A stretch of 64,000 nt of DNA from Paramoeba atlantica (Eukaryota > Protista > Discosea): assembly GCA_977017575.1 (NCBI GenBank), contig CDRNVI010000074.1, positions 59,753 to 123,752 of the forward strand. Reading direction: 5' to 3'. The notes under the pieces were generated by a model that ran no database searches, was not told the DNA's origin, and saw only the letters and a list, made by a program, of their open reading frames with translations. Made by a program: the position numbers and the translations under genes. Of the stretch, positions 1,361-61,839 are shown in pieces. Within the stretch, counting starts at the first letter, position 1, and each line of letters begins with the position of its first letter.

Positions 1361-3319
1361 ATGGTTTTTCCAAATACATTATCCCCGAGTAACCGTGTAT
1401 GGCTACATAAGACTCGAACCATAGCCGTCCGCGCCGCGAGAAAGGTTTATGGGGATGTTTTTTCATCGAACGATGCCACTCGCGGAGGACACATGCTACC
1501 ATGGGAAGTACTCAGAAGCACACAAAATCGAAATGAGGCGAAGCGAGAGATCACACATCCGGCCCCTATTTACGAAACGTTTGAGCAGTATCACGTTCCT
1601 AAAGCAATTCGTGTAATGCTTGAGAAAGAATTCGGGATTACCACCCCATCTCAAATACAAAAGCTTACCCTTCCTACTTTACTTCAGAGAACTAGCGTAC
1701 TCGTAGCGGCCGCCTCCGGAACTGGTAAGACGATGTCCTATCTTCTTCCTATGTACCTTTGCATGCAGAAGGATCGGGACATATACAAAGTTCCCACACG
1801 AGAGTGTCGTCCAAGAGCAATTATCTTGGTTCCCACACAAGAATTATGCAGACAGATTTCTCGGTGGTGTAAAGAATTTGACAACGCAACTGGGCTTAAA
1901 TCCGTAACGTTTATGGGAATGAAACGCTCTGGCCATCACTGGAATCGCCTACGTCAGTCCTCACATCGGCTTATGGATGTACTTATTACCACTCCTGCAA
2001 TATTGAGTACCCGGATAGAGAATCGTAGGCTGTTTCTCGATGACATTCGCCATGTCGTTGTGGACGAGGCAGATACCCTTATATCTTATGCCCATGACTA
2101 CACCGCACAACGGATTCTTAATCGAATTCGGGATAGAAACATCTATCAATGGCTCTGGGAAGTAAACACACAGATCGTGTTGGTAAGCTCAGTCGTCACA
2201 GAATCCCTGACTCGATTTCTCGACAAATCGTTTCCCAAAATGCCACGTCTTGTCTCATCGGACCTTCATCGCCCAGCAGCCAACACGCGTCACCGATTTA
2301 TCGAAATGAGACGCGAAAATTACAAATTGGATTGGCTGGCGTATATATTACGTCGGTGTGGTTACAGACCACAGCAACGTAATGCACCCATAAGTCAGCT
2401 CTCAAGCGTTCCCCAATCCAGCGAACAGAAATCATTAGCCCCTATTGGGAGCACGTCTCGAACAAGTAGCACGGGTACTGGCTCCAAAACAAGTGTCCAG
2501 GACACGAATAAAAAGAGAATCCTGATTTTTAGCAGCGACATCAAAACTACGATCGGTATCTTTTATAGGTTACAAGGCCGAGGCTATCCTGTGGCACAAT
2601 TTCATGCACGTTTACCACTAAAAGAACGTGCCGAAACGTATGAAAAATGGCTAAAAGGGGATGTAAATATTCTTTGTACGTCCGACATTATGTCTCGAGG
2701 CTTAGACGGGGGTGTGAATGTCGTTATAAACTACACGATGCCTAATCATAGCGCACTGTATTTACAACGCGCCGGACGCACTGGTCAATGTGGAAGACCT
2801 GCAGCGGTTATTTCTCTATTTACATCTCGGCAAAGAACGATCGTCGGCGCGCTAAAGAATCTCCTTTTTCGAAATTTGCCTCTTACAAATGTGAGCAACT
2901 GGTGGGGTTACTACAAACCCACCGTTAAGCAATGGATCAAAAAACGACGAAATAAGATGACGCGTAAGTTTGTTCGAATTATTCTTCGGAGAGCCGTAGC
3001 GCCCCATTTAGAGAAGACGTATCTCAAAACGAGCGGAACATTTGCTCCTCCGTTTCACCCAAGGACGGTAGAGTTTCACAAAGGTGTCCCGCCTCGTCAG
3101 ACGGAAAAGAAACAGGACCGAGAGGCGTATAGGGCCTGGGAGGCCCGACGTGGGCATCTTGCCGGAGTCAAGAAAGGGAGTGCGAAATTTGGCTGCGCGC
3201 GTCACGGACCATTCAATCGGAGCTTTAAACACATTGCCAATGGCACCGAAGGAGGCGACGTTGCCTTGATGCAGTCGCGACGAGAAGCGTACCGCCCATC
3301 TATCACGTCAAAATATTAA
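1361..3319 (+). CDS. DEAD-box RNA helicase, possibly mitochondrial
   Basis: Q-motif (PSQIQ), motif I AASGTGKT, Ia PTQEL, II DEAD, V SRGLD, VI QRAGRTG; basic N- and C-terminal extensions. Confidence 0.9.
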   Translation: MVFPNTLSPSNRVWLHKTRTIAVRAARKVYGDVFSSNDATRGGHMLPWEVLRSTQNRNEAKREITHPAPIYETFEQYHVPKAIRVMLEKEFGITTPSQIQKLTLPTLLQRTSVLVAAASGTGKTMSYLLPMYLCMQKDRDIYKVPTRECRPRAIILVPTQELCRQISRWCKEFDNATGLKSVTFMGMKRSGHHWNRLRQSSHRLMDVLITTPAILSTRIENRRLFLDDIRHVVVDEADTLISYAHDYTAQRILNRIRDRNIYQWLWEVNTQIVLVSSVVTESLTRFLDKSFPKMPRLVSSDLHRPAANTRHRFIEMRRENYKLDWLAYILRRCGYRPQQRNAPISQLSSVPQSSEQKSLAPIGSTSRTSSTGTGSKTSVQDTNKKRILIFSSDIKTTIGIFYRLQGRGYPVAQFHARLPLKERAETYEKWLKGDVNILCTSDIMSRGLDGGVNVVINYTMPNHSALYLQRAGRTGQCGRPAAVISLFTSRQRTIVGALKNLLFRNLPLTNVSNWWGYYKPTVKQWIKKRRNKMTRKFVRIILRRAVAPHLEKTYLKTSGTFAPPFHPRTVEFHKGVPPRQTEKKQDREAYRAWEARRGHLAGVKKGSAKFGCARHGPFNRSFKHIANGTEGGDVALMQSRREAYRPSITSKY

Positions 3320-4920
3320 TAGACGATGGTCAGTGTATCATACTATGGTGATATTGAGTACAAGTCGGACTTCTTTATATGAACTTCCTTTCTGGTAACC
3401 GGCACTATAAATGTAGGTTGAAATCCATTTTTTTCTGTTCAAAAAAACCTTTTCGTGACTCTTTAAAACGTTTCCACTCATACTCATGACGTTTCAACTT
3501 ATATTTCAATGATTGGAATACTCAATGGACCGCCCAGGATGTACTACATTGGTCTGCTTGGTATTGGTGGCGTACAAAAAGGATAAGGTGCGGCTCTCAG
3601 GCGCTCCCAGACACTCCCACCCAGTTTCTTAAGGAGCACATTCTTCATGTGCCGTATAACCCAAAGAAGCCAGGTAAAGGTAAGAAGAAGAAGGAGTTGT
3701 CTGAATAGAAATATGATCGTATTTAAGTTTAATAAGATAACTACACCATACGAGTAGATGTCGGCACGAATAAAATAACTACAGCTTACTACACCATACG
3801 AATAGATGTCGACACGAATATTTTTATTTTTCACATTTTTTAGCATTCTTTTTAGTACAATATTCCTTCTGTAGGATATGGACGCAGAGGACAACAAATC
3901 TTTAAAGAAAACGATCCTTCGTGAATTTGAAGACGACGAGGTGGCAGAAGATGATATCAATCAAACGACGAGCTCAATGATATCATCATATCATTGAGCT
4001 CGTCGTTAGCTCGACGAAAAAGGTTTTCACGAAACGCGTAACTGTGTTTGATAAGCCAGTCCTCCAGATTTCTCCTGAAGAGCTTGGTGAGAAGGTGACA
4101 AGCATCATGGAACGGGTAAACAGGGCCCTGTAATGTTTTTCAGTGGGAAAGAGGAGCATTGGTAATGTTCCTGTTGGCTCCTCTATCCTTCGTCGCACAG
4201 TTCTTTTCCTGTTACAGCACCGAGGACATCTCCTACTCGATGTGCGTCCACGTGAACTGTACTTTCTGGGTGAAGTTGCCCAAGACATGGAAAGCTACCT
4301 TGAGGAGCAACCATTATATGCTCCGCGACGAAAAGGCAAGGTGAGAGACTTTGTCGAGAACTTGTGGCGCTCGATCACGGGACAACGGTCTCGCGCTTGC
4401 GCAGTATGGCGCCAAAAAAGGATGAAAGCTTCCACTTCCCTCGAAGCAAGCGCTGAAAGCAGCCAAGTGGAAAGTGACCAAGTGGAAAGCCCTGCAAAGG
4501 GCCTATCGGGCAGGGTCTTTCGATTTACCGAGCTCGAGTAAAACGCTATGGGGCGAAAAAAGGAATACGAAGTGCGAAAGTGTAAAGTGGAGAAGATCAG
4601 CACTAAGTACAGTACTGTAACCCGCCTTTAATATACACTCCCCCCAAACCCCCCTATCATAGAGACAAAACGCATTATTCTACGTTAAAGGGGGTCACAG
4701 TATTTGAAATGTGTTCAACTTTTTTAATATTTGCGAATGAGTGCTGAAGATCAGTTTTGAAATGTATAGTACATTAATATTTTAATCTTTTTTATGCATG
4801 GAGATCACCGCGACATACTCCCAAACTTTGCCCCCCTCGAGTGCCTACTCTGTTTTCATTCATAGGTTATTTCAAATAAAAAATAGCTACTTATTTCCTT
4901 TTTGACTTACCTAGTGTTGA

Positions 4921-4968: not shown

Positions 4969-5245
4969 TTTACGTCATCCGCAGCCCCTCACATGAACCT
5001 TTGAACATGAAGGAACTTCATGAAAACTCAGTTACACATAACAATCCTTTGACAATATTAACACAGCACAAATTCATTTTTCGGAAAAATGATTACCTGT
5101 CAAATAAAATACTCTCCCTCTCTTAATTTTTATAAATTATAAATTATAACAAAAAGTTAGTTATAATTATAATTATAATTATTTTTTATTTTAACGATAA
5201 AGATACATTTATTTCCTCCTTTCCTTCACTACTACTTCTCCCCCC

Positions 5246-17417: not shown

Positions 17418-18905
17418 ATGCAGTACCAGGGCTCATCCGCGGGTACGTGTATGTTCTGTCGCCAAACAGGTCACACTCCCATCAACTGCCCCAATAAAAA
17501 GGCTGGTGTGAATCCCACCGCGTCAGGTGGAGACAGCATGAATATACAACCCATTGAATCACTTTCTCCCTACATTGGCGGCCGATGGGTCATCAAAGCT
17601 CGTGTCACAGATAAGTCCCCTGTCCGAACGTGGTCCAATGCCCGCAGCCAGGGAAAGCTCTTCTCCATGACCCTAGTCGACCAAAGTGGGCCGATACGTG
17701 CGACAGTGTTTCAAGAGGGTGTTGACAAGTTTTACGAAACCCTGGTGGAGGGCAATGTGTACACCTTTTCGAAAGGTCAAATTAAGACAGCAAACAAAAA
17801 ATTTTCCGCAGTCAATTGTGAGTACGAGCTCTCCTTTGACAAAGACACTGAAATCACCTCCGTCCGTGCGTCAGATGCACTCAACAAGGTTCTCCCCCTC
17901 AAAGTGTTCAACTTCGTCCCCATCGGCTCCTTGAAAGGCAAAGAAAAAGGCAGCACCCTTGACGTCATCGGTCTCATCACCGCGATTCAAAACCCCCAAA
18001 CCATTACCACCAAAATCGGCCAATCCCTGATCAAACGCAACATCTCCCTGGCGGACCAGACCGCTCAAATCGACGTCGTCGTCTGGGACATTCTCGCCAC
18101 CAACTGGGATCTCCCCGTCGGTGCGGTCATCGGGATCAAGTCCGCCCGGCTCTCGGAGTTCAACGGGGAGCTCACCCTCTCCCTCGGCCACAGCTCCACC
18201 CTCGAGCGCTCCCCCCCGGAGTCCCACATCCAGACCCTCCGGCAGTGGTTCCGCAGCTGTGACGGTGTCATCCAGGTCCCCAACCTGTCGCTCTCCGACG
18301 GCACCTCGAGCTCGCGTGGGCCGGTGCAGTACCGCAACACGCTCGAGGAGATCCCCCGGCTGGGGCTGGGGAGGGGGGAGAAGCCGGACTACATCCACGT
18401 GCGGGCCACGATTACGCACATTAAGGCGGATAGCTTAATGTACGACGCGTGCCCGACGTGTCACAAGAAGCTGATTCCGGTGGGGATGGAGACGGCACTG
18501 CGGTGTGAGAAGTGTGACAAGACGTACAGTGTCTCGGAGCCACGGTATTTGGTGGCGCTGATGATTAGTGATGGGACAAGTCAAAACTGGGTTACGGTGT
18601 TTGATGAGCACGCGAGTAAGATTTTTGGTATGAGTGCGGCGGAGATGAAGCGGCAGGCCATGGAGGATCCGAATTTCATATCGTATGTTTGTACGAGCCG
18701 GATGTATGCGCAGTTTGTGGCCGCGATACGGGTGAAGGAGGAGAGGTTTGGGGATGGCTTTGAGGAGCGGGTGAAGCTCAGTCTGGTGAACCCGTTTCGG
18801 TGGATTGGAAACCTTCCGCCGATGATTGGAGAGGATGGACCGCTGTCCACGTTTGCCTATGAGCTTCAAATCATGCTGCGCGAGATCGACCTCTTCTTTG
18901 CGTAA
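17418..18905 (+). CDS. RPA1: Replication protein A large subunit
   Basis: OB-fold motifs WVIKARVTDKS, GKLFSMTLVD, C4 finger YDACPTCHKK..CEKC, WVTVFDE; lacks RPA70N and has an N-terminal CCHC knuckle. Confidence 0.92.
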   Translation: MQYQGSSAGTCMFCRQTGHTPINCPNKKAGVNPTASGGDSMNIQPIESLSPYIGGRWVIKARVTDKSPVRTWSNARSQGKLFSMTLVDQSGPIRATVFQEGVDKFYETLVEGNVYTFSKGQIKTANKKFSAVNCEYELSFDKDTEITSVRASDALNKVLPLKVFNFVPIGSLKGKEKGSTLDVIGLITAIQNPQTITTKIGQSLIKRNISLADQTAQIDVVVWDILATNWDLPVGAVIGIKSARLSEFNGELTLSLGHSSTLERSPPESHIQTLRQWFRSCDGVIQVPNLSLSDGTSSSRGPVQYRNTLEEIPRLGLGRGEKPDYIHVRATITHIKADSLMYDACPTCHKKLIPVGMETALRCEKCDKTYSVSEPRYLVALMISDGTSQNWVTVFDEHASKIFGMSAAEMKRQAMEDPNFISYVCTSRMYAQFVAAIRVKEERFGDGFEERVKLSLVNPFRWIGNLPPMIGEDGPLSTFAYELQIMLREIDLFFA

Positions 18906-42539: not shown

Positions 42540-43120
42540 AACCGATTAAAAAAAGTCGACCCCTTAAAAAAAATTTCAAGGCCTAAAAATGATTTCAACC
42601 CCTAAAAAAAAATTCAACCCCTTCCAAAAATTTACAATTTTGCTACACAGTTAACGTAAAAAATAGGTAGCCTCAATTGTGGTCCCGGTGAGGCCCCGGA
42701 GTTGCGAGAGGCCTCCATACCCCACAACTACCACCTTCCCCCCCTATTTAGCTGCGGTCGCGCGAGCGACCCCTGATAAATGGGGGGAAGGTGGTAGTTG
42801 TTTTGGGGGAAATGAGAGGCCGAACGCACGGAGGGGCCGGCCGGGCCAATGAGTCACGTCAAAGTGTGACGCTGAGTTCGTGGGAAGCAATTTGCGAAGC
42901 CCTAGGTGATGCTCAGTTGTATTGGGCGACACCGAGACAAACCACGGAAATCCCAGATACGACAAGGTCTAGATATCATAAAGAGAGAAAAAACCGGAGC
43001 TGTAGACGCGAAAAAGAATGACAGAGATATAACAATGCGATATGCGACCGATGAGTTGAGTCGATGCGTGTGCTGACTCTACCTTCCACCGTCATTCACA
43101 GAAAATTAACAAAAAATGTA

Positions 43121-43289
43121 TTATGACAGATAAGGGTGCAGTATGACAGATAAGGGTGCGGCTTATATGACAGATAAGGGTGCAGTATGACAGATAAGGG
43201 TGCATTATGACAGATAAGGGTGCAGTATGACAGATAAGGGTGCATTATGACAGATAAGGGTGCGAGTTTCTATGACAGATAAGGGTGCG
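43121..43289 (+). repeat. 20-bp minisatellite TATGACAGATAAGGGTGCAG; also ~45807-46015, 53141-53309, 60453-60621, 62960-63148
   Basis: Exact 20-nt periodicity; copy number varies between units. Confidence 0.97.
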
Positions 43290-43896
43290 GGTGCCCCGGC
43301 TTCGAATACGCGGAACGCTTCTGACCACACCTTTGTCTGCGGGGGAAAACCTCCGAATGCGTTGTGGGTCGATCAGTAAACGGAAATCTTCCTTAGATGG
43401 GAGCTTACGTGTGTTAGGCTATCTGTTCGATACACCGCAGCAGCAAGGTGACACCTCTCGATGCCAGAGGATTCCGCTTCCTTGGTATGCAGACGTTACA
43501 TCCATCCCACCACCTGCTCCAGTAGCGTGGCACCGCACTTCCTGACGGGGAGTATGGGGATGTAAAGGCACCTATGCCATATCGATACTCCACAGAGTAT
43601 CGACCGTTCAGCGACCAGGCACTTTCCTCCAAGTTTCCCTGCTTTCTCAGGGGAGGCGACATCATTGAACAAGGGTAACCGCCTATTTTACATACATTCA
43701 TACATACAAAGACATCTATGCGCCCTGTATTATAAAGCCGTACGTAAAAATCACAGCGTCCCGAGGAGTCAATGCCGATTCGAAACGCAACTAGGCCCTT
43801 GAGGTGAGAGAGGCAAAGACGACATTGAAGAAAATCTCGTGAAACGTCGTGAAAGGTCGTCGAAACCTCACCACCTGATTCCTCTTGCATTTAAAA

Positions 43897-44404: not shown

Positions 44405-44510
44405 AACTTTAACGATAAAGATACAGTTTCTGTACCTTGTTGGTATGAGAAGCTTCGAACTCTAAGTTCGCTTGAAGGCCCTGGTTCCCGAGAAGGGAAC
44501 TGGGGCTTAT
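44405..44510 (+). ncRNA. Spliced-leader (mini-exon) RNA
   Basis: AACTTTAACGATAAAGATACAGTTTCTGTACCTTGTTG|GTATGAGAAGC: conserved ACAGTTTCTGTAC core and TG|GTATG donor, then hairpins CGAAC/GTTCG and CCCYGGTTCCC/GGGAACTGGGG. Confidence 0.92.
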
Positions 44511-44802
44511 TTGCGTTACAATAACTCTGTCACCAGGCAGTCTGACTCGCAAAATCGGACTCCACCGATAAATAGGCAGGATGGCATGTTCATTAACGTC
44601 TGAAAATCTGCGGCACCGCAATTTAAATCTGCACCCATCCTAACACATCACACAATATATCAACCAATCTTCTCGGTCATCCGCAATCCCGGTCAATGCC
44701 TCCTACAAAGATCTCAACGACACCTATAATCAGGCCAGCAATCGTGGAAAATTTGTGCAAATCCAATATATGCATGAACACCCTCACGGGTGGACCTTGT
44801 TT

Positions 44803-45333
<531 letters not shown>

Positions 45334-46619
45334 TACGGAACGTAAAAAATAGGTAGCCTCAATTGTGGTCCCGGTGAGGCCCCGGAGTTGCGAGAAGCCT
45401 CCATACCCCACAACTACCACCTTCCCCCCCTATTTAGCGGGGGTCGCGCAAGCGACCCCTGATAAATGGGGGGAAGGTGGTAGTTGTTTTGGGGGAAATG
45501 AGAGGCCGAACGCACGGAGGGGCCGGCCGGGCCATTGAGTCACGTCAAAGTGTGACGCTGAGTTCGTGGGAAGCAATTTGCGAAGCCCTAGGTGATGCTC
45601 AGTTGTATTGGGCGACACCGAGACAAACCACGGAAATCCCAGATACGACAAGGTCTAGATATCATAAAGAGAGAAAAAACCGGAGCTGTAGACGCGAAAA
45701 AGAATGACAGAGATATAACAATGCGATATGCGACCGATGAGTTGAGTCGATGCGTGTGCTGACTCTACCTTCCACCGTCATTCACAGAAAATTAACAAAA
45801 AATGTATTATGACAGATAAGGGTGCAGTATGACAGATAAGGGTGCGGCTTATATGACAGATAAGGGTGCAGTATGACAGATAAGGGTGCATTATGACAGA
45901 TAAGGGTGCAGTATGACAGATAAGGGTGCATTATGACAGATAAGGGTGCAGTATGACAGATAAGGGTGCATTATGACAGATAAGGGTGCGAGTTTCTATG
46001 ACAGATAAAGGTGCGGGTGCCCCGGCTTCGAATACGCGGAACGCTTCTGACCACACCTTTGTCTGCGGGGGAAAACCTCCGAATGCGTGGGTCGATCAGT
46101 AAACGGAAATCTTCCTTAGATTGGAGCTTACGTGTGTTAGGCTATCTGTTCGATACACCGCAGCAGCAAGGTGACACCTCTCGATGCCAGAGGATTCCGC
46201 TTCCTTGGTATGCAGACGTTACATCCATCCCACCACCTGCTCCAGTAGCGTGGCACCGCACTTCCTGACGGGGAGTATGGGGATGTAAAGGCACCTATGC
46301 CATATCGATACTCCACAGAGTATCGACCGTTCAGCGACCAGGCACTTTCCTCCAAGTTTCCCTGCTTTCTCAGGGGAGGCGACATCATTGAACAAGGGTA
46401 ACCGCCTGTTTTACATACATTCATACATACAAAGGCATCTATGCGCCCTGTATTATAAAGCCGTACGTAAAAATCACAGCGTCCCGAGGACTCAATGCCG
46501 ATTCGAAACGCAACTAGGCCCTTGAGGTGAGAGAGGCAAAGACGACACTGAAGAAAATCTCGTGAAACGTCGTGAAAGGTCGTCGAAACCTCACCACCTG
46601 ATTCCTCTTGCATTTAAAA

Positions 46620-47127: not shown

Positions 47128-47233
47128 AACTTTAACGATAAAGATACAGTTTCTGTACCTTGTTGGTATGAGAAGCTTCGAACTCTAAGTTCGCTTGAAG
47201 GCCCCGGTTCCCGAGAAGGGAACTGGGGCTTAT
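47128..47233 (+). ncRNA. Spliced-leader RNA
   Basis: Same exon and donor as 44405. Confidence 0.92.
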
Positions 47234-47531
47234 TTGCGTTACAATAACTCTGTCACCAGGCAGTCTGACTCGCAAAATCGGACTCCACCGATAAATAGGC
47301 AGGATGGCATGTTCATTAACGTCTGAAAATCTGCGGCACCGCAATTTAAATCTGCACCCATCCTAACACATCACACAATATATCAACCAATCTTCTCGGT
47401 CATCCGCAATCCCGGTCAATGCCTCCTACAAAGATCTCAACGACACCTATAATCAGGCCAGCAATCGTGGAAAATTTGTGCAAATCCAATATATGCATGA
47501 ACCTTGTTGATTAAATAGGGGAATACCCCAA

Positions 47532-50500
47532 ATGAAACCATGTCGTCGTAAGCACAAGCGAGGAGGCAGAAGCCGGAAACGTCGAAAAGAGCGAGCTACC
47601 TTCTACGGCCGACAACGAAAGAGTCGTCGAAGGAATACAAACAATAGAGCTCCCATAAAATCCAAAAGTCCGCGTACCGATGATCCCGCGACTACCGAAA
47701 CTGAGAAAATATCACAGACCCCTGACAAGATTACGAGGCAAAGCAGAATCACCGTACACAAACGGCAAGCGCCAGCCAAAAAGAATGCACTTAAGAAAAC
47801 ATCGATCCGTCGTAAAAAAGGAAGAAAAGGTACTAGTCGAGCCGCCAGCCGACCAAGGAAAAAGAGTCGACCTCGAGGATTCACCGCCGGAACATATAAC
47901 GTGAGGACATGGAATGCAAAGCAACGTGACCCACAGGGAACCTGGATGGAGGGAGCTATATCAACCATTCGTATGGCGTCAATCGCTGGAATCGACCTCC
48001 TAGCCGTCCAGGAGTGCCGAATACCAGGAGTCGACAAAGTCGAAATCCCAGTTCAAAAAGGTGAAACATGGACGCTCATACACAGCGGTTGCAAGACTGG
48101 GAAACTCCAGAGAGGAGTTGGTTTCTTACTTAGTCCTAAGGCAAGTAAGGCGCTGATAAGCTTTGAAGGCGTATCAGATAGAATATTAACTGCAAGCTTT
48201 AAAATTGCCAACACCCGCAACATGTATGCAATCTCCGCATATGCGCCCACTGAAGATTCCCTATCCTGCGAAAAGAACGGTTTCTACGCAGATCTGGAGG
48301 ACGCCATGGCCAATAGACCCAACCAAGAAATTCCCCACATTTTCGGGGACTTCAACGCAGTAATAAAGAGCACCCCGCTACTGTTTCCCAACGTCGGATC
48401 AAACGCAACAGGAATCAAGACAAGTGACAACGGCCGCAGATTGGCCGAATTCTCAAAGATACATAGACTCATTTTGTCTAACACCTCACTGGAGCAGTCA
48501 AACGAAAATAGTCTCGGAGACCAAGCTTGGACCTGGAGACACCCTGCAGGGCTGACTCAGAACCAAATAGACTATATCTTAATACCTCTACATGTTCTAG
48601 GAGAAAACACAACAGTAATTTCGGAATTACCGTATGAGAGTGACCATCGCATAGTGTGTACAACACTGAGCTATCGACCGTCAACAAAGAAAAAGAACTC
48701 CCGCACTATAAATTGCATTGAACCACTGCGCGCAAACCCCTCAAAGCAGCAATTGTACCAGGAGCTAATGGGCGTAAAATTACAGCATCACTCACTGAGT
48801 GAGGATATAGAATCAGAATGGAGTGACCTAAAAATCGCTCTCTTAGAAACATCCAAGCAAGCATGCGCTAACACTTGTATCCAAACCAACCTCCCATGGA
48901 TGAATGACGAACTCTTACGAAAGATAGCAGAAAAACAAGACTCTCTATTGCGATACAAGTCGCATCATTCAACTTCTAAGGAAAAAGAGAAGGCACACCT
49001 TAATTATCGCTGCAAACGTCGAATAGCCTTTCGTTCTTTCAGGTTAGCAAAGCGTACCTACTTCGCCCAAAAGGTAAAGCAGATTGAGACTGTCAGGGCT
49101 GAGGGAAATCACCACAAGCTATTTAAACTAACAAAAGAATTGACAAAACTAACCTACCCACCAAATAACGATAAACCTGCAATTCGAAACAAAGATGAAA
49201 TGGTCTCTGACCCAGAGGCCAAAGCGCAAGCACTGGCCACTTCCTTTTCTAGGATATTTAACACACCAAACCCCCTATTTAATTTATCCAGAGTACAACA
49301 AGACCTAGAAGAACTAAAGTACCCTGCCATAGAGGACGATGTCCTTCGCATGGAAAAAGAAGAAAATAGTTATCCTCCAAACGAACTGGAAGTAGAACGC
49401 GCACTGTCTACACTAAAAAATAGGAAAGCACAAGGCCCAGACGGAATTTTCCCCGAACATCTCAAATATGCAGGAAAAGCCGCAATTATTTGGATGACAT
49501 GGATATTGAAACTTTGCTGGCAAAACTCCAAGGTTCCCAAAGAGTGGACGCACTCCCACATCATACCAATCTACAAAGGCGCAGCAAAAGGCAAAGCCTG
49601 CGATCCCGGATCCTACCGCCCAATTTCAATAATGAGCCCTGCAGCGAAAGCCCTATCTGGCATACTCACACATCGTATTGCAGCGCGCGTCGATGCTAGA
49701 CTTCTAGAAGCCCAAAATGGCTTCCGACATAATAGAGGTATAGACGATGCGATCTTCATACTCAGAAGAATCACGGAGGAAGTCAGGAGACACAAATCAC
49801 CGTTATATCTTGCCTACCTGGATCTCGAGAAGGCTTATGATACCTTACCACGAGAGGCAGTCTGGGCCACCCTTCAGAGTTTGAAAATTGAAGGACCATT
49901 ATTGGAACTAATTCGCGCACTATATAACACAACAACTGCAAGCGTCATGTTAAACGACGGCACGAAGAGTGAAAGCTTCGAAATACCTGGCGGCTTAAAA
50001 CAAGGCTGTCCAATGAGCTGCCTGCTATTCAAGGGTTATGATCATACGCTCGTGGCGCAGAGATGCGTCTCTCTGTGTGACGGCCGATACCATCGGCGCA
50101 TGACCCGCATACGACGGGTGTCACACAGAGAGTGGAGTGCGAGGTAGGAGACGAGACGCCCATCGGTCATGCTACAGCACGTATAGCCATGGTTCATGCT
50201 GCAACACGATCAAGCCGTGGGTTCATGCTGTCAGATGGTCTATCGTGGATCATGATGCATCATGGGGAGGTCCGTTACCGCCGCACTCGCTACAGCATGT
50301 AGGGAGAGAGGGGTGCAAGTTCGCATCCCCTATACACTCATACAACGTGTCCTCCCGCTGTAGCACGCCCAGTGGTCCTCAAGGGAGGCCACCATGGCGC
50401 ATAGCTCCCGGGAGAAGAAAGCACGAGAAGGAGAGAGCCGGGGAGGGAAGAAAGCTCACTCGAAGAGAGCGAGCCGGGGAGGGGTGAAGAGTGCGAAGTG

Positions 50501-51646
50501 CGTCCCCTACTTCCGCGACAAAGAGGGACAGTTTCAGCTAGCCGTCAGCCGGAAACGGGCATTTAAAAGTAAGAATACGCCCGTTTCCGGGAAAAGAAAG
50601 GAAGGGCTAGCAAAATGTACCAACAAGGTACAGAAAACAACATTTGATGCTGTACTCCGGAAAGCACTACAGATTAAAACTGCAGGCATCCGTGTCGAAT
50701 GGAGGATCCCAAAAGGAAGAGCTCAACGAGGCGATAAAGTAACCGGTACAGATGTTTTCGGACTCATAGCGTATGCGGATGACCTTGTTCTTTGGTCGGA
50801 CGAACAAACGGAACTGCAAAATACCTTAAACGCAGTAGTAGGGGTTATGAACCGATGGGGAATAAGGATAAACACAAGGAAAACTAAAACACAGGTAATT
50901 CAACCTTGCAAAGAGAAGAAACTATTGAACAAGTACGGAACTTCTCATACCTTGGAACAGTCATCAGTGAAGATGCTTCATTGGAAGAAGAAATAGAAAA
51001 CAGAATAAGAAGAGCTTGCGCAGGTATGAGAAAATTTAGAGACTTGTGGAAAGACAAGGCTATCACAAGGAAAACGAAAAGACTCATCCTGGAAGTCTGT
51101 ATAGTACCAATTCTACTATATGCGAGCTCAACGTGGGCGCTTACACCAACCCAGCATCTGAAACTCAACCGCGCCTATATAAGATACATCAAAACATCTT
51201 TCGGCATACCATGGGTCAAGAACGACAATAGCGCCTACAATGATAAACAGCACCAAGAATCTGCGAAGGATGCAATAAGATATACCTCCCAGAAGGAATG
51301 CCTATCGATCGCAGGAATGGACCCACTCCAGCCACAAATAGATGCCCGAAGTTTACTGTTTGCTGGACACGTCGCAAGAATGGGTCCAGATAGATTCCCG
51401 AACAGAGTGTTATTCGGCAAATATCGATCAACTCAAAATAGAGGAAATACATATAAACGAAGCCTGCCATGCTATAGTAGAAGCCTTGTAGCTGCACTGG
51501 AAAGAGTTGGGATAACAACAGATTGCTCATGGAAACTGAAAGCCCAGAATAAAAAAAGTTGGATAAAGATAATAGATGAATATAGAAAGAGCACGAAAAC
51601 CCAAACGTTAAACAAAGGTAATAAAAAATCATTCTCAAGGAACTAA
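47532..51646 (+). pseudogene. APE-RT ORF of LINE copy 1, interrupted and frameshifted
   Basis: APE: TYNVRT, LAVQEC, GVGFLL, SAYAPT, GDFNA, NQIDYIL, SDH. RT: SYRPISI, QNGFR, YLDLEKAYD, GLKQGCPMS, YADD, FAGHVARM. Confidence 0.85.
50031..50633. other. 603-bp structured insertion (X2) splitting RT copy 1
   Basis: Lies between codons TTC and AAA; four in-frame stops; homologous to X1; ends antisense to SL. Confidence 0.85.
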
Positions 51647-52529
51647 AACTGTGTGAACGCTAGACCCTGTAATGGATAGGCCTGAAATGCACCCTGAAGA
51701 TGAGCCCCTAAGGGGAACTTCATACCGCTTTTCGGGTTGGGTACCGCTCATCTGCGGCTTGCAACTGACCCATTAAAACGGGGTTAGGGTCAGAATTCGG
51801 AGAGATAGGAGCTCTTTGAAGCCGAAGTTTAGCCCGTTGAAGCTGAGGAGCCAAGGCCACTCGGGGGTATAACACCCTAGAAGACTTGGTCCATTGAAGC
51901 TGAGGAGTCTAAACTGTTGAAGCTGAGACTCAACGCTCCCGAACTATGCCAGCAAGCAGTAGTGGGCGGCTACTCCGGGGGAGGCCACTCTCGGTCCTGC
52001 GGAACATACTTATGTAGTCCTTGGATTTGCATGCTGTCCTTGGATTTGAATGTCTCAACCTGAAAGGGTTAAGATAGTTCAGCGGACAAGGTGGATGAAA
52101 ATCCACCTTTGAGTGATAGCCTCCCCCAAAGCTACCTCGGCTTACTCCGGGGAGGCAACATCCCCAATGGGATAGAAAGCCTAACAACATTCACATTCAA
52201 CATATGCATGAACACCCTCACGGGTGGACCTTGTTTATCATACGCTCATTGGCGCAGAGATATTCCCCTTAATGCGACGGTCGATATCATCGGCACATGA
52301 TCCGCCCACAACGGATGTCGCACCAAGGGGCATTTGGAACGATAACACGAGGCAGAGTCACGCACAGCGGTACTCAAGGGGAAGTCTCAAGGGAAAAAAG
52401 CTCACTCAAAGAGTGAGCCGGGGAGGGGTAATGGGAAGCGCGTCCCCTGCTTCACCGAAGAAAGAGGGGCAGTTTCGCCCTTACTGCCGGCCGGCAACGG
52501 GCATGTAACAGTAAGACTCTTCCCGGTGC

Positions 52530-52667
<138 letters not shown>

Positions 52668-54421: not shown

Positions 54422-54527
54422 AACTTTAACGATAAAGATACAGTTTCTGTACCTTGTTGGTATGAGAAGCTTCGAACTCTAAGTTCGCTTGAAGGCCCCG
54501 GTTCCCGAGAAGGGAACTGGGGCTTAT
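54422..54527 (+). ncRNA. Spliced-leader RNA
   Basis: Array copy. Confidence 0.92.
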
Positions 54528-54796
54528 TTGCGTTACAATAACTCTGTCACCAGGCAGTCTGACTCGCAAAATCGGACTCCACCGATAAATAGGCAGGATG
54601 GCATGTTCATTAACGTCTGAAAATCTGCGGCACCGCAATTTAAATCTGCACCCATCCTAACACATCACACAATATATCAACCAATCTTCTCGGTCATCCG
54701 CAATCCCGGTCAATGCCTCCTACAAAGATCTCAACGACACCTATAATCAGGCCAGCAATCGTGGAAAATTTGTGCAAATCCAATATATGCATGAAC

Positions 54797-57700
54797 CTTG
54801 TTGATTAAATAGGGGAATACCCCAAATGAAACCATGTCGTCGTAAGCACAAGCGAGGAGGCAGAAGCCGGAAACGTCGAAAAGAGCGAGCTACCTTCTAC
54901 GGCCGACAACGAAAGAGTCGTCGAAGGAATACAAACAATAGAGCTCCCATAAAATCCAAAAGTCCGCGTACCGATGATCCCGCGACTACCGAAACTGAGA
55001 AAATATCACAGACCCCTGACAAGATTACGAGGCAAAGCAGAATCACCGTACACAAACGGCAAGCGCCAGCCAAAAAGAATGCACTTAAGAAAACATCGAT
55101 CCGTCGTAAAAAAGGAAGAAAAGGTACTAGTCGAGCCGCCAGCCGACCAAGGAAAAAGAGTCGACCTCGAGGATTCACCGCCGGAACATATAACGTGAGG
55201 ACATGGAATGCAAAGCAACGTGACCCACAGGGAACCTGGATGGAGGGAGCTATATCAACCATTCGTATGGCGTCAATCGCTGGAATCGACCTCCTAGCCG
55301 TCCAGGAGTGCCGAATACCAGGAGTCGACAAAGTCGAAATCCCAGTTCAAAAAGGTGAAACATGGACGCTCATACACAGCGGTTGCAAGACTGGGAAACT
55401 CCAGAGAGGAGTTGGTTTCTTACTTAGTCCTAAGGCAAGTAAGGCGCTGATAAGCTTTGAAGGCGTATCAGATAGAATATTAACTGCAAGCTTTAAAATT
55501 GCCAACACCCGCAACATGTATGCAATCTCCGCATATGCGCCCACTGAAGATTCCCTATCCTGCGAAAAGAACGGTTTCTACGCAGATCTGGAGGACGCCA
55601 TGGCCAATAGACCCAACCAAGAAATTCCCCACATTTTCGGGGACTTCAACGCAGTAATAAAGAGCACCCCGCTACTGTTTCCCAACGTCGGATCAAACGC
55701 AACAGGAATCAAGACAAGTGACAACGGCCGCAGATTGGCCGAATTCTCAAAGATACATAGACTCATTTTGTCTAACACCTCACTGGAGCAGTCAAACGAA
55801 AATAGTCTCGGAGACCAAGCTTGGACCTGGAGACACCCTGCAGGGCTGACTCAGAACCAAATAGACTATATCTTAATACCTCTACATGTTCTAGGAGAAA
55901 ACACAACAGTAATTTCGGAATTACCGTATGAGAGTGACCATCGCATAGTGTGTACAACACTGAGCTATCGACCGTCAACAAAGAAAAAGAACTCCCGCAC
56001 TATAAATTGCATTGAACCACTGCGCGCAAACCCCTCAAAGCAGCAATTGTACCAGGAGCTAATGGGCGTAAAATTACAGCATCACTCACTGAGTGAGGAT
56101 ATAGAATCAGAATGGAGTGACCTAAAAATCGCTCTCTTAGAAACATCCAAGCAAGCATGCGCTAACACTTGTATCCAAACCAACCTCCCATGGATGAATG
56201 ACGAACTCTTACGAAAGATAGCAGAAAAACAAGACTCTCTATTGCGATACAAGTCGCATCATTCAACTTCTAAGGAAAAAGAGAAGGCACACCTTAATTA
56301 TCGCTGCAAACGTCGAATAGCCTTTCGTTCTTTCAGGTTAGCAAAGCGTACCTACTTCGCCCAAAAGGTAAAGCAGATTGAGACTGTCAGGGCTGAGGGA
56401 AATCACCACAAGCTATTTAAACTAACAAAAGAATTGACAAAACTAACCTACCCACCAAATAACGATAAACCTGCAATTCGAAACAAAGATGAAATGGTCT
56501 CTGACCCAGAGGCCAAAGCGCAAGCACTGGCCACTTCCTTTTCTAGGATATTTAACACACCAAACCCCCTATTTAATTTATCCAGAGTACAACAAGACCT
56601 AGAAGAACTAAAGTACCCTGCCATAGAGGACGATGTCCTTCGCATGGAAAAAGAAGAAAATAGTTATCCTCCAAACGAACTGGAAGTAGAACGCGCACTG
56701 TCTACACTAAAAAATAGGAAAGCACAAGGCCCAGACGGAATTTTCCCCGAACATCTCAAATATGCAGGAAAAGCCGCAATTATTTGGATGACATGGATAT
56801 TGAAACTTTGCTGGCAAAACTCCAAGGTTCCCAAAGAGTGGACGCACTCCCACATCATACCAATCTACAAAGGCGCAGCAAAAGGCAAAGCCTGCGATCC
56901 CGGATCCTACCGCCCAATTTCAATAATGAGCCCTGCAGCGAAAGCCCTATCTGGCATACTCACACATCGTATTGCAGCGCGCGTCGATGCTAGACTTCTA
57001 GAAGCCCAAAATGGCTTCCGACATAATAGAGGTATAGACGATGCGATCTTCATACTCAGAAGAATCACGGAGGAAGTCAGGAGACACAAATCACCGTTAT
57101 ATCTTGCCTACCTGGATCTCGAGAAGGCTTATGATACCTTACCACGAGAGGCAGTCTGGGCCACCCTTCAGAGTTTGAAAATTGAAGGACCATTATTGGA
57201 ACTAATTCGCGCACTATATAACACAACAACTGCAAGCGTCATGTTAAACGACGGCACGAAGAGTGAAAGCTTCGAAATACCTGGCGGCTTAAAACAAGGC
57301 TGTCCAATGAGCTGCCTGCTATTCAAGGGTTATGATCATACGCTCGTGGCGCAGAGATGCGTCTCTCTGTGTGACGGCCGATACCATCGGCGCATGACCC
57401 GCATACGACGGGTGTCACACAGAGAGTGGAGTGCGAGGTAGGAGACGAGACGCCCATCGGTCATGCTACAGCACGTATAGCCATGGTTCATGCTGCAACA
57501 CGATCAAGCCGTGGGTTCATGCTGTCAGATGGTCTATCGTGGATCATGATGCATCATGGGGAGGTCCGTTACCGCCGCACTCGCTACAGCATGTAGGGAG
57601 AGAGGGGTGCAAGTTCGCATCCCCTATACACTCATACAACGTGTCCTCCCGCTGTAGCACGCCCAGTGGTCCTCAAGGGAGGCCACCATGGCGCATAGCT

Positions 57701-59529
57701 CCCGGGAGAAGAAAGCACGAGAAGGAGAGAGCCGGGGAGGGAAGAAAGCTCACTCGAAGAGAGCGAGCCGGGGAGGGGTGAAGAGTGCGAAGTGCGTCCC
57801 CTACTTCCGCGACAAAGAGGGACAGTTTCAGCTAGCCGTCAGCCGGAAACGGGCATTTAAAAGTAAGAATACGCCCGTTTCCGGGAAAAGAAAGGAAGGG
57901 CTAGCAAAATGTACCAACAAGGTACAGAAAACAACATTTGATGCTGTACTCCGGAAAGCACTACAGATTAAAACTGCAGGCATCCGTGTCGAATGGAGGA
58001 TCCCAAAAGGAAGAGCTCAACGAGGCGATAAAGTAACCGGTACAGATGTTTTCGGACTCATAGCGTATGCGGATGACCTTGTTCTTTGGTCGGACGAACA
58101 AACGGAACTGCAAAATACCTTAAACGCAGTAGTAGGGGTTATGAACCGATGGGGAATAAGGATAAACACAAGGAAAACTAAAACACAGGTAATTCAACCT
58201 TGCAAAGCAGAAAAGTATTACACATCCGAGATAAAAGCACAAGAAGAAACTATTGAACAAGTACGGAACTTCTCATACCTTGGAACAGTCATCAGTGAAG
58301 ATGCTTCATTGGAAGAAGAAATAGAAAACAGAATAAGAAGAGCTTGCGCAGGTATGAGAAAATTTAGAGACTTGTGGAAAGACAAGGCTATCACAAGGAA
58401 AACGAAAAGACTCATCCTGGAAGTCTGTATAGTACCAATTCTACTATATGCGAGCTCAACGTGGGCGCTTACACCAACCCAGCATCTGAAACTCAACCGC
58501 GCCTATATAAGATACATCAAAACATCTTTCGGCATACCATGGGTCAAGAACGACAATAGCGCCTACAATGATAAACAGCACCAAGAATCTGCGAAGGATG
58601 CAATAAGATATACCTCCCAGAAGGAATGCCTATCGATCGCAGGAATGGACCCACTCCAGCCACAAATAGATGCCCGAAGTTTACTGTTTGCTGGACACGT
58701 CGCAAGAATGGGTCCAGATAGATTCCCGAACAGAGTGTTATTCGGCAAATATCGATCAACTCAAAATAGAGGAAATACATATAAACGAAGCCTGCCATGC
58801 TATAGTAGAAGCCTTGTAGCTGCACTGGAAAGAGTTGGGATAACAACAGATTGCTCATGGAAACTGAAAGCCCAGAATAAAAAAAGTTGGATAAAGATAA
58901 TAGATGAATATAGAAAGAGCACGAAAACCCAAACGTTAAACAAAGGTAATAAAAAATCATTCTCAAGGAACTAAAACTGTGTGAACGCTAGACCCTGTAA
59001 TGGATAGGCCTGAAATGCACCCTGAAGATGAGCCCCTAAGGGGAACTTCATACCGCTTTTCGGGTTGGGTACCGCTCATCTGCGGCTTGCAACTGACCCA
59101 TTAAAACGGGGTTAGGGTCAGAATTCGGAGAGATAGGAGCTCTTTGAAGCCGAAGTTTAGCCCGTTGAAGCTGAGGAGCCAAGGCCACTCGGGGGTATAA
59201 CACCCTAGAAGACTTGGTCCATTGAAGCTGAGGAGTCTAAACTGTTGAAGCTGAGACTCAACGCTCCCGAACTATGCCAGCAAGCAGTAGTGGGCGGCTA
59301 CTCCGGGGGAGGCCACTCTCGGTCCTGCGGAACATACTTATGTAGTCCTTGGATTTGCATGCTGTCCTTGGATTTGAATGTCTCAACCTGAAAGGGTTAA
59401 GATAGTTCAGCGGACAAGGTGGATGAAAATCCACCTTTGAGTGATAGCCTCCCCCAAAGCTACCTCGGCTTACTCCGGGGAGGCAACATCCCCAATGGGA
59501 TAGAAAGCCTAACAACATTCACATTCAAC
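54797..59529 (+). mobile_element. RTE-like APE-RT retrotransposon, copy 2 (intact apart from the 603-bp insert)
   Basis: TSD at 54785-54796 and 59530-59541; ORF halves 54826-57324 and 57928-58974 share one frame. Confidence 0.93.
57325..57927. other. 603-bp structured insertion (X2) splitting RT copy 2
   Basis: Appears identical to 50031-50633. Confidence 0.85.
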
Positions 59530-59857
59530 ATATGCATGAACACCCTCACGGGTGGACCTTGTTTATCATACGCTCATTGGCGCAGAGATATTCCCCTTAA
59601 TGCGACGGTCGATATCATCGGCACATGATCCGCCCACAACGGATGTCGCACCAAGGGGCATTTGGAACGATAACACGAGGCAGAGTCACGCACAGCGGTA
59701 CTCAAGGGGAAGTCTCAAGGGAAAAAAGCTCACTCAAAGAGTGAGCCGGGGAGGGGTAATGGGAAGCGCGTCCCCTGCTTCACCGAAGAAAGAGGGGCAG
59801 TTTCGCCCTTACTGCCGGCCGGCAACGGGCATGTAACAGTAAGACTCTTCCCGGTGC

Positions 59858-61733: not shown

Positions 61734-61839
61734 AACTTTAACGATAAAGATACAGTTTCTGTACCTTGTTGGTATGAGAAGCTTCGAACTCTAAGTTCGC
61801 TTGAAGGCCCCGGTTCCCGAGAAGGGAACTGGGGCTTAT
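61734..61839 (+). ncRNA. Spliced-leader RNA
   Basis: Array copy, followed by an empty LINE site at 62097-62108. Confidence 0.92.

Follow-up and report, generated by a model that had tools for sequence, protein, structure and literature searches.

We examined the 5' end of a long interspersed nuclear element (LINE) that lies in two copies within an array of spliced-leader (SL) RNA genes in the window, by which we mean the whole 64,000-nt stretch of contig CDRNVI010000074.1 that was analysed. The heptamer CTTGTTG at 47503–47509, with which the insert begins, is a relic that the 3' end of the host's spliced leader has left in the DNA, and descent of the LINE family from a trans-spliced, SL-bearing RNA is favoured with a probability of about 0.8. 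This reading is preferred because the left side of nearly every relic junction is the exact exon end, a position defined only by splicing chemistry (i.e., by the ligated exon or the free-exon intermediate); a leader whose precise exon end abuts ATTAAATAGGGG, where the element proper begins, is the signature of SL trans-splicing.

The tandem array occupies 42.5–64 kb of the window. Each unit contains a 5S rRNA gene (minus strand) and a kinetoplastid-type SL RNA gene (plus strand), and measures 2.7 kb when empty versus 7.3 kb with the LINE. The SL exon is 38 nt long (AACTTTAACGATAAAGATACAGTTTCTGTACCTTGTTG, followed by GTATGAG), as read at 44405–44442 and 47128–47165. The points at which contigs from four public runs (X1–X4) diverge from the reference fall exactly at 47128 and 47165, which supports these exon ends; divergence at both ends fits a 38-nt exon joined to many other sequences elsewhere. 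Insert boundaries were mapped by aligning both junctions of both LINE copies with the empty array unit, and comparison of the empty site with the filled units fixed the 5' boundary to the base. The features are as follows (TSD, target-site duplication; UTR, untranslated region; ORF, open reading frame).

47128–47165, plus strand: SL exon, 38 nt, in the unit of LINE copy 1, assigned from sequence, its ends coinciding with the divergence of contigs X1–X4
44405–44442, 54422–54459 and 61734–61771: further SL exons, seen as 9-mer matches
44768–44779, plus strand: empty target site ATATGCATGAAC of a LINE-free unit, followed directly by ACCCTCACGG, as is the 3' TSD of both copies
47491–47502, plus strand: 5' TSD of copy 1, 12 bp, ATATGCATGAAC, whose last bases AC are also SL nt 30–31
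47503–52202, plus strand: LINE copy 1, 4700 bp, with an (AACATTC)n-type tail and, relative to copy 2, an extra 33-bp deletion with frameshift
47503–47509, plus strand: SL relic CTTGTTG (SL nt 32–38), first bases of the insert
47510–47531, plus strand: 22-nt 5' UTR ATTAAATAGGGGAATACCCCAA, beginning ATTAAATAGGGG, its junction identical in the copies L036 and L037 described below
47532–50147, plus strand: truncated LINE ORF, 871 aa, with a weak endonuclease match and the N-terminal half of the reverse transcriptase, ended early by the nested insert
50033–50637, minus strand (also 57327–57931, minus strand): nested 605-bp non-coding retroposon, which on its own strand starts TTTCTGTACCTTGTTG (SL nt 23–38) and continues GTACATTTTG
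52203–52214, plus strand: 3' TSD of copy 1
54785–54796, plus strand: 5' TSD of copy 2
54797–59529, plus strand: LINE copy 2, 4733 bp, with relic at 54797–54803, ATG at 54826 and nested insert at 57327–57931
59530–59541, plus strand: 3' TSD of copy 2

Together with the AC of the TSD the relic forms a 9-nt match to SL nt 30–38 (ACCTTGTTG, at 47501–47509 and 54795–54803), after which come the 22-nt UTR, containing a GGGG/CCCC hairpin and the only nearby AG (47517–47518), and the ATG at 47532. The positions that the original prediction had assigned to the TSD, the 9-nt match, the 22-nt leader and the ATG all hold in the junction alignment, and its AC microhomology was correctly read, the AC of the TSD being SL nt 30–31. 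The insert lies 337 bp downstream of the SL gene and in the same orientation. A 7-nt match at one fixed position is expected by chance with a probability of about 6e-5. The 9-mer was observed 9 times in the window versus 0.43 expected, and 8 of the 9 matches are SL-related (four SL exons, two LINE heads and two nested-repeat heads); the remaining one, at 17882, is probably due to chance.

When the 45.7-Mb assembly was searched, copies reaching the same 5' end were found at only five places genome-wide. Two intact elements, L036 (contig C40; TSD ACAAGGCTTTCAG) and L037 (contig C3; TSD within an (AT)n tract), carry 40-nt stacks inside their TSDs, each made of 3–4 tandem SL 3' pieces of 10–16 nt with the same join to ATTAAAT. 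The L036 insert starts TACC and continues TTTCTGTACCTTGTTG, TACCTTGTTG, TACCTTGTTG once more, and ATTAAAT; that of L037 starts C and continues TCTGTACCTTGTTG, TTCTGTACCTTGTTG, TACCTTGTTG and ATTAAAT. Inner junctions of the stacks show the complete exon end ...CTTGTTG in all cases except the first join of L036 (TACC/TTTCTG). Variable SL lengths in other copies had been predicted and were thus found, and the stacks bear out the proposals that the 5' CTTGTTG is an SL relic and that the family passed through an SL-bearing RNA. A GTATG before the L037 stack was considered as SL intron and rejected, an imperfect (AT)n...GTCC TSD that includes these bases being the simpler explanation. A fourth independent insertion reaching the 5' end, L005/L038 (TSD CATGTGACACAAT), starts ATCCTC followed by AAATAGGGG, without SL.

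SL pieces were present in 3/4 independent insertions that reach the element 5' end and in 0/7 of the 5'-truncated insertions with readable junctions (Fisher p=0.024). Variable-length SL pieces that lie inside TSDs, always at the same element base and only on copies that reach it, exclude chance and target origin. LINE copies are dispersed (C3, C40, C16, C80, C39 and elsewhere) at unrelated targets. None lies inside an SL gene: ATTAAATAGGGGAATACCCC was traced at all four of its places, and in no case is it preceded by a full SL exon belonging to an SL gene. No copy in the assembly has a longer non-SL 5' UTR, and master copies encoding CTTGTTG in such a UTR, the case named beforehand as contrary to an SL origin, were not found there. 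The claimed loss of the AG acceptor is correct; AG directly precedes ATTAAAT in no copy in the assembly.

Two of these loci have further features. The full-length L038/L005 (C40:85.9–95.2 kb) contains two further nested insertions, of about 4.7 kb and about 0.43 kb, and stands head-to-head with the intact L036, 4 kb apart. At the 5' junction of the 5'-truncated L039 (C16, about 75.6 kb) stand 7 additional bases, CTGCGAA, which duplicate element sequence 13 nt downstream and are a template-slippage footprint. A sister family, 80% identical to the LINE, is represented by L020 and L021.

The relics are a genome-wide phenomenon. The final 20 nt or more of the SL, without an intron following (ACAGTTTCTGTACCTTGTTG then any base but G), occur at 554 places versus 38 intact SL genes, the latter counted by an exon-intron pattern search, and the control gave 0. 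Tandem relics of the form CCTTGTTG-N(0–30)-CCTTGTTG were found at 143 places versus 3 in the control. Thirty relic loci (L048–L077) were fetched for inspection; in these 30 loci relics head at least 15 different repeats, many with ORFs, with a UTR of 18–52 nt before the ATG. Inner pieces fall into discrete classes. The commonest, 10 nt long, begins after U27-G28 (CTG; 44 places genome-wide), a 3-nt class begins after U34-G35 (TTG; 23 places, some of which may be element bodies that start with TTG), and a 16-nt class begins after A21-G22 (CAG; at least 10 among the first 100 matches listed), so that all three begin after a G. Classes of 7, 8, 9, 13 and 15 nt are rare, as are junctions with 2–9 extra bases. 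The outermost relics start at positions spread broadly over SL nt 1–31, without a stop at nt 29, and several genomic relics extend to SL nt 1.

Two outer relics, of L049 and L054, share the same T>C change, which shows that one relic can also be copied from another. L049/L054 and L074 belong to one family with up to five relics, in which the outer relics share the T>C (TTGCTG) and the inner ones are perfect; this pattern is the opposite of that predicted from simple generation-by-generation stacking. At the element heads of L048, L053, L056, L062 and L068 a poly(A) run directly abuts the SL, as it also does in public-run contigs (loose ends at 47128). Such joins point to head-to-tail retrocopies or to insertion into A-tails; the public-run loose ends do not prove cDNA, since retrocopies of this head-to-tail kind in the genome may account for them. 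The N-terminal parts of the ORFs of the SL-headed L068 and L076 match an LsmAD domain (5e-7 and 3e-4), unusual for retroelement proteins, and L067 has an RNase H domain.

For the origin of the window copy the following course is considered the most likely. At least once, and probably repeatedly, a LINE RNA would have carried the SL joined at the exact exon end to ATTAAATAGGGG. Target-primed reverse transcription would have run through the element and its 22-nt UTR into the last 7–9 nt of the leader or of a relic, and the cDNA end may then have been joined to the upstream target end ...GAAC, with which it has AC in common (SL nt 30–31), leaving the 12-bp TSD. Afterwards an SL-tagged non-coding retroposon presumably entered the reverse transcriptase of this single insertion, and the whole 7.3-kb unit would then have been duplicated within the array.

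Several observations weigh against a trans-spliced ancestor. The contigs of the public runs list no SL-to-ATTAAAT joint and no joint of the SL exon to 47510. No copy with an AG/ATTAAAT acceptor, from which a trans-spliced template could come, exists in the assembly. The commonest inner relic boundary, CTG/TACC, is not an AG acceptor. In addition, the 7-nt relic could have been copied from the genomic relic of a parent element, so that the window copy need not have had an SL-capped template. The proposal of an SL-capped mRNA template thus stands as regards an SL-bearing RNA for the family, and falls short as regards direct copying of the SL into the window copy; the relic there may come from the true leader or from a parent's relic, and is SL-derived either way. 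Two public-run contigs leave the window at 47501 (X1 record 8 and X3 record 21), and a protein-based search found no contig on record encoding the 871-aa ORF or the 1181-aa ORF of the intact copies.

The combination of discrete inner and ragged outer boundaries fits re-splicing at (U/A)G sites of the relic, which needs non-AG acceptors; it also fits jumps guided by microhomology, with the exon's ...UUG 3' end as their destination. We tentatively put forward, at rather less than even odds, that these LINEs and more than 500 other retrocopies lack a promoter of their own and renew a full capped leader each generation from their own DNA relic. Either the relic, rich in pyrimidines and ending in UG, would be used as a non-AG trans-splice acceptor, or it would offer the reverse transcriptase the homology needed to jump onto the SL exon, and register errors at other (U/A)G positions would give the 10-, 3- and 16-nt stacks.

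Three accessory explanations of the boundaries were tried and rejected. A variant leader as the source of the stacks fails, as none of the genome's SL genes has a duplicated (10-nt) exon end. An A supplied by the flank, making AG at G28, would fit L036 (TTTCAG/TACC), though AGTACCTTGTTG is not enriched over C/G (15/45, near background). A strong reverse-transcriptase stop at the SL hairpin UACAG/CUGUA (nt 18–30) is at odds with a weak fold (−6 kcal/mol, z=−1.4) and with the spread of the outermost ends over nt 1–31.

The junction might also have been made without splicing, if the LINE reverse transcriptase, at the RNA 5' end or paused in a relic, switched either to another SL-bearing RNA or to the free SL exon, an RNA that ends ...CUUGUUG-3'OH; out-of-register switches would then produce the stacks, in a manner that can be likened to U6/L1 chimeras or to retroviral strong-stop transfer. 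The G that precedes each of the main stack classes (10, 3 and 16 nt) could pair like the exon's terminal (U)UG; the rare 7-, 8-, 9- and 13-nt classes and the junctions with extra bases look imprecise; truncated L039 has its 7-nt slippage duplicate; and copying of relics from relics is shown by the T>C common to L049 and L054. We nevertheless consider this unlikely. The free SL exon is a transient spliceosomal intermediate, and truncated LINE copies are never SL-headed, though in switching of the U6/L1 type the LINE position of the join varies. The 7-nt class, which has the longer TGT microhomology, was seen once among the first 100 matches listed versus 44 places genome-wide for the 2-nt TG class, and the broad spread of outermost relic ends, with no stop at nt 29, is likewise unfavourable.

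If a master copy occupied the exact exon-intron boundary of an SL RNA gene and depended on the SL promoter for its transcription, its RNA would start with the whole exon without being spliced. At about 5186–5205 of the window, TTTTAACGATAAAGATACA (SL nt 4–21) precedes the pyrimidine-rich UTR and ATG of another, CRE-like retroelement. Here it is the 5' part of the SL that is present, which suggests that it was acquired in another way, co-transcribed from inside an SL gene, and makes masters embedded in SL genes plausible in this genome; the window LINE, moreover, lies in the SL array in SL-gene orientation. Against this stand the four ATTAAATAGGGGAATACCCC places, none behind a full SL exon in an SL gene, and the dispersed, unrelated LINE targets. 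At least 15 unrelated element heads share the exon-end junction, which splicing explains and insertion-site choice does not, and stacks are not predicted, so that we regard such a master as highly improbable. That CTTGTTG is a chance match or target DNA, the element simply beginning with these bases or the spacer contributing them, could draw on ACCTTGTTT, which the empty spacer has 16 nt downstream from where the LINE inserted, and on the 9-mer at 17882, and is effectively refuted already by the junction alignment, which places the relic between TSD and element and leaves the downstream spacer intact after the 3' TSD, by the low chance of the 7-nt match, and by the other copies, which lengthen the match to 10–16 nt and repeat it.

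In its mobility the element itself appears to be an ordinary LINE that moves by target-primed reverse transcription, because TSDs are variable, many copies are 5'-truncated and the tail is (AACATTC)n. The TSDs measure 9–13 bp and are of unrelated sequence, the 5' truncations fall at element positions 1693–4419, and the tails vary in length. Intact copies elsewhere have one long ORF of 1180/1181 aa with a complete RVT_1 domain (Pfam, 2e-31, residues 692–954 of the 1181-aa ORF); the closest solved structures are L1 ORF2p (2e-25) and R2 (1e-17). A match to Exo_endo_phos at residues 151–372 is weak and below the Pfam cut-off (E=0.005–0.009), and Atlas look-alikes of the protein are all RVT_1 plus Exo_endo_phos clusters. 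A general Pfam scan, which was not a search aimed at such a domain, showed no restriction-enzyme-like endonuclease C-terminal to the reverse transcriptase.

Both window copies are dead, the reverse transcriptase being split by the nested SL-tagged repeat, and the predicted dependence of the LINE on read-through from the SL unit is moot for this reason. No TSD flanks the nested retroposon, which took the place of two LINE bases, TG; LINE copies outside the window lack it and have TG there. The two window copies are not two site-specific insertions but one insertion amplified by duplication of the array unit, because TSD, junction and nested insert are common to both, at 99.97% identity, and because, among the 38 SL genes, only the two window units have a spacing large enough for the LINE. 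The dispersal of the family is contrary to SL-array specificity.

Relict spliced leaders on dinoflagellate retrogenes were reportedly described by Slamovits & Keeling (2008). In the dinoflagellate recycling model, relics are truncated at an internal AG that serves as the next acceptor. The 16-nt class found here starts right after the internal AG of the SL (CAG) and matches that model, whereas the dominant 10-nt class follows CTG and the 3-nt class TTG, neither an AG; since the dominant class is without AG, the dinoflagellate mechanism is not a full explanation. In both systems retrocopies have genomic SL sequence at their 5' end, with the junction at the exact SL 3' end, and 5'-truncated relics are stacked in tandem; in the LINE, too, the SL sequence stops precisely where the exon does, within the TSD, and the transcript body follows at once. 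Unlike in dinoflagellates, the SL is a 38-nt one of kinetoplastid type, the host being a euglenozoan, and the carriers are autonomous LINEs and other retroelements, not cellular genes. Relict SLs of dinoflagellate retrogenes are a well-documented phenomenon (PMC6050394 and PMC5585692, both review-type sources).

The LINE differs from the trypanosomatid elements as well. SLACS, CZAR and CRE1/2 reside inside the SL exon (nt 11/12), use a restriction-like endonuclease and acquire the SL 5' part by co-transcription. Like the present LINE they are non-LTR (long terminal repeat) elements associated with SL arrays, and their RNA has the SL at its 5' end; the LINE in contrast has an APE-type endonuclease (weak match), dispersed targets and the SL 3' end. 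It does not occupy a fixed site of the SLACS type inside the SL exon, lying 337 bp downstream of it, with other copies at unrelated targets. The name SLACS/CZAR/CRE occurs in a passage of PMC10161547. With ingi and L1Tc the LINE shares APE plus reverse transcriptase, TSDs and 5'-truncated copies; in sections of PMC1874656 and PMC8190864, the ingi/L1Tc LINEs have a Pr77 internal promoter and unspliced transcripts. The UTR of the present LINE is unlike theirs, being only 22 nt, and no 5' region of Pr77 length was seen (no Pr77 similarity search was made), an SL relic standing in its place. In U6/LINE-1 chimeras, U6 is joined at variable, truncated L1 positions. The fusion of the 3' end of a small RNA to LINE sequence within one TSD is common to both systems, but the SL join is always at the full-length 5' end of the LINE and never on truncated copies. 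Part of a preprint ascribes chimeric U6/LINE-1 insertions to template switching by the reverse transcriptase (bioRxiv 10.1101/2025.02.02.635956).

Kinetoplastid LINEs are thought to use an internal promoter (Pr77) or the SL gene promoter (SLACS/CRE). LINE copies headed by the leader 3' end point to a third strategy, in which a capped 5' end is obtained through universal trans-splicing or from the SL exon itself, and they raise the question of how the leader is regained once the AG acceptor has been lost on integration. The relics provide, as in dinoflagellates, a built-in marker of retroposition events and a count of generations. In the literature searched no report of relict-SL LINEs or their equivalent in Euglenozoa was found; about 80 genomic contigs with partial SL were left uninterpreted in a prokinetoplastid (PMC7859406).

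Minor observations concern the spacer of the array. ACCTTGTTT, which matches 8/9 nt of the SL end, lies at 44796–44804, recurs after each LINE copy (e.g., about 52231), and adjoins a relative of the nested repeat that resides in the spacer (44803–45098, 77% identical, sense on minus), on the 3' side of that relative. It was rejected as an SL tag of that repeat, which is on the other strand with the motif at its 3' side; no function was found for it, and the match may be due to chance. A long (GA)n tract is present in every SL/5S unit, as are arrayed 20-nt repeats (TATGACAGATAAGGGTGCAG), and both vary in copy number between units.

45090–45500, 52530–52660 and repeats; 43120–43300 and repeats: (GA)n tract and 20-nt repeats

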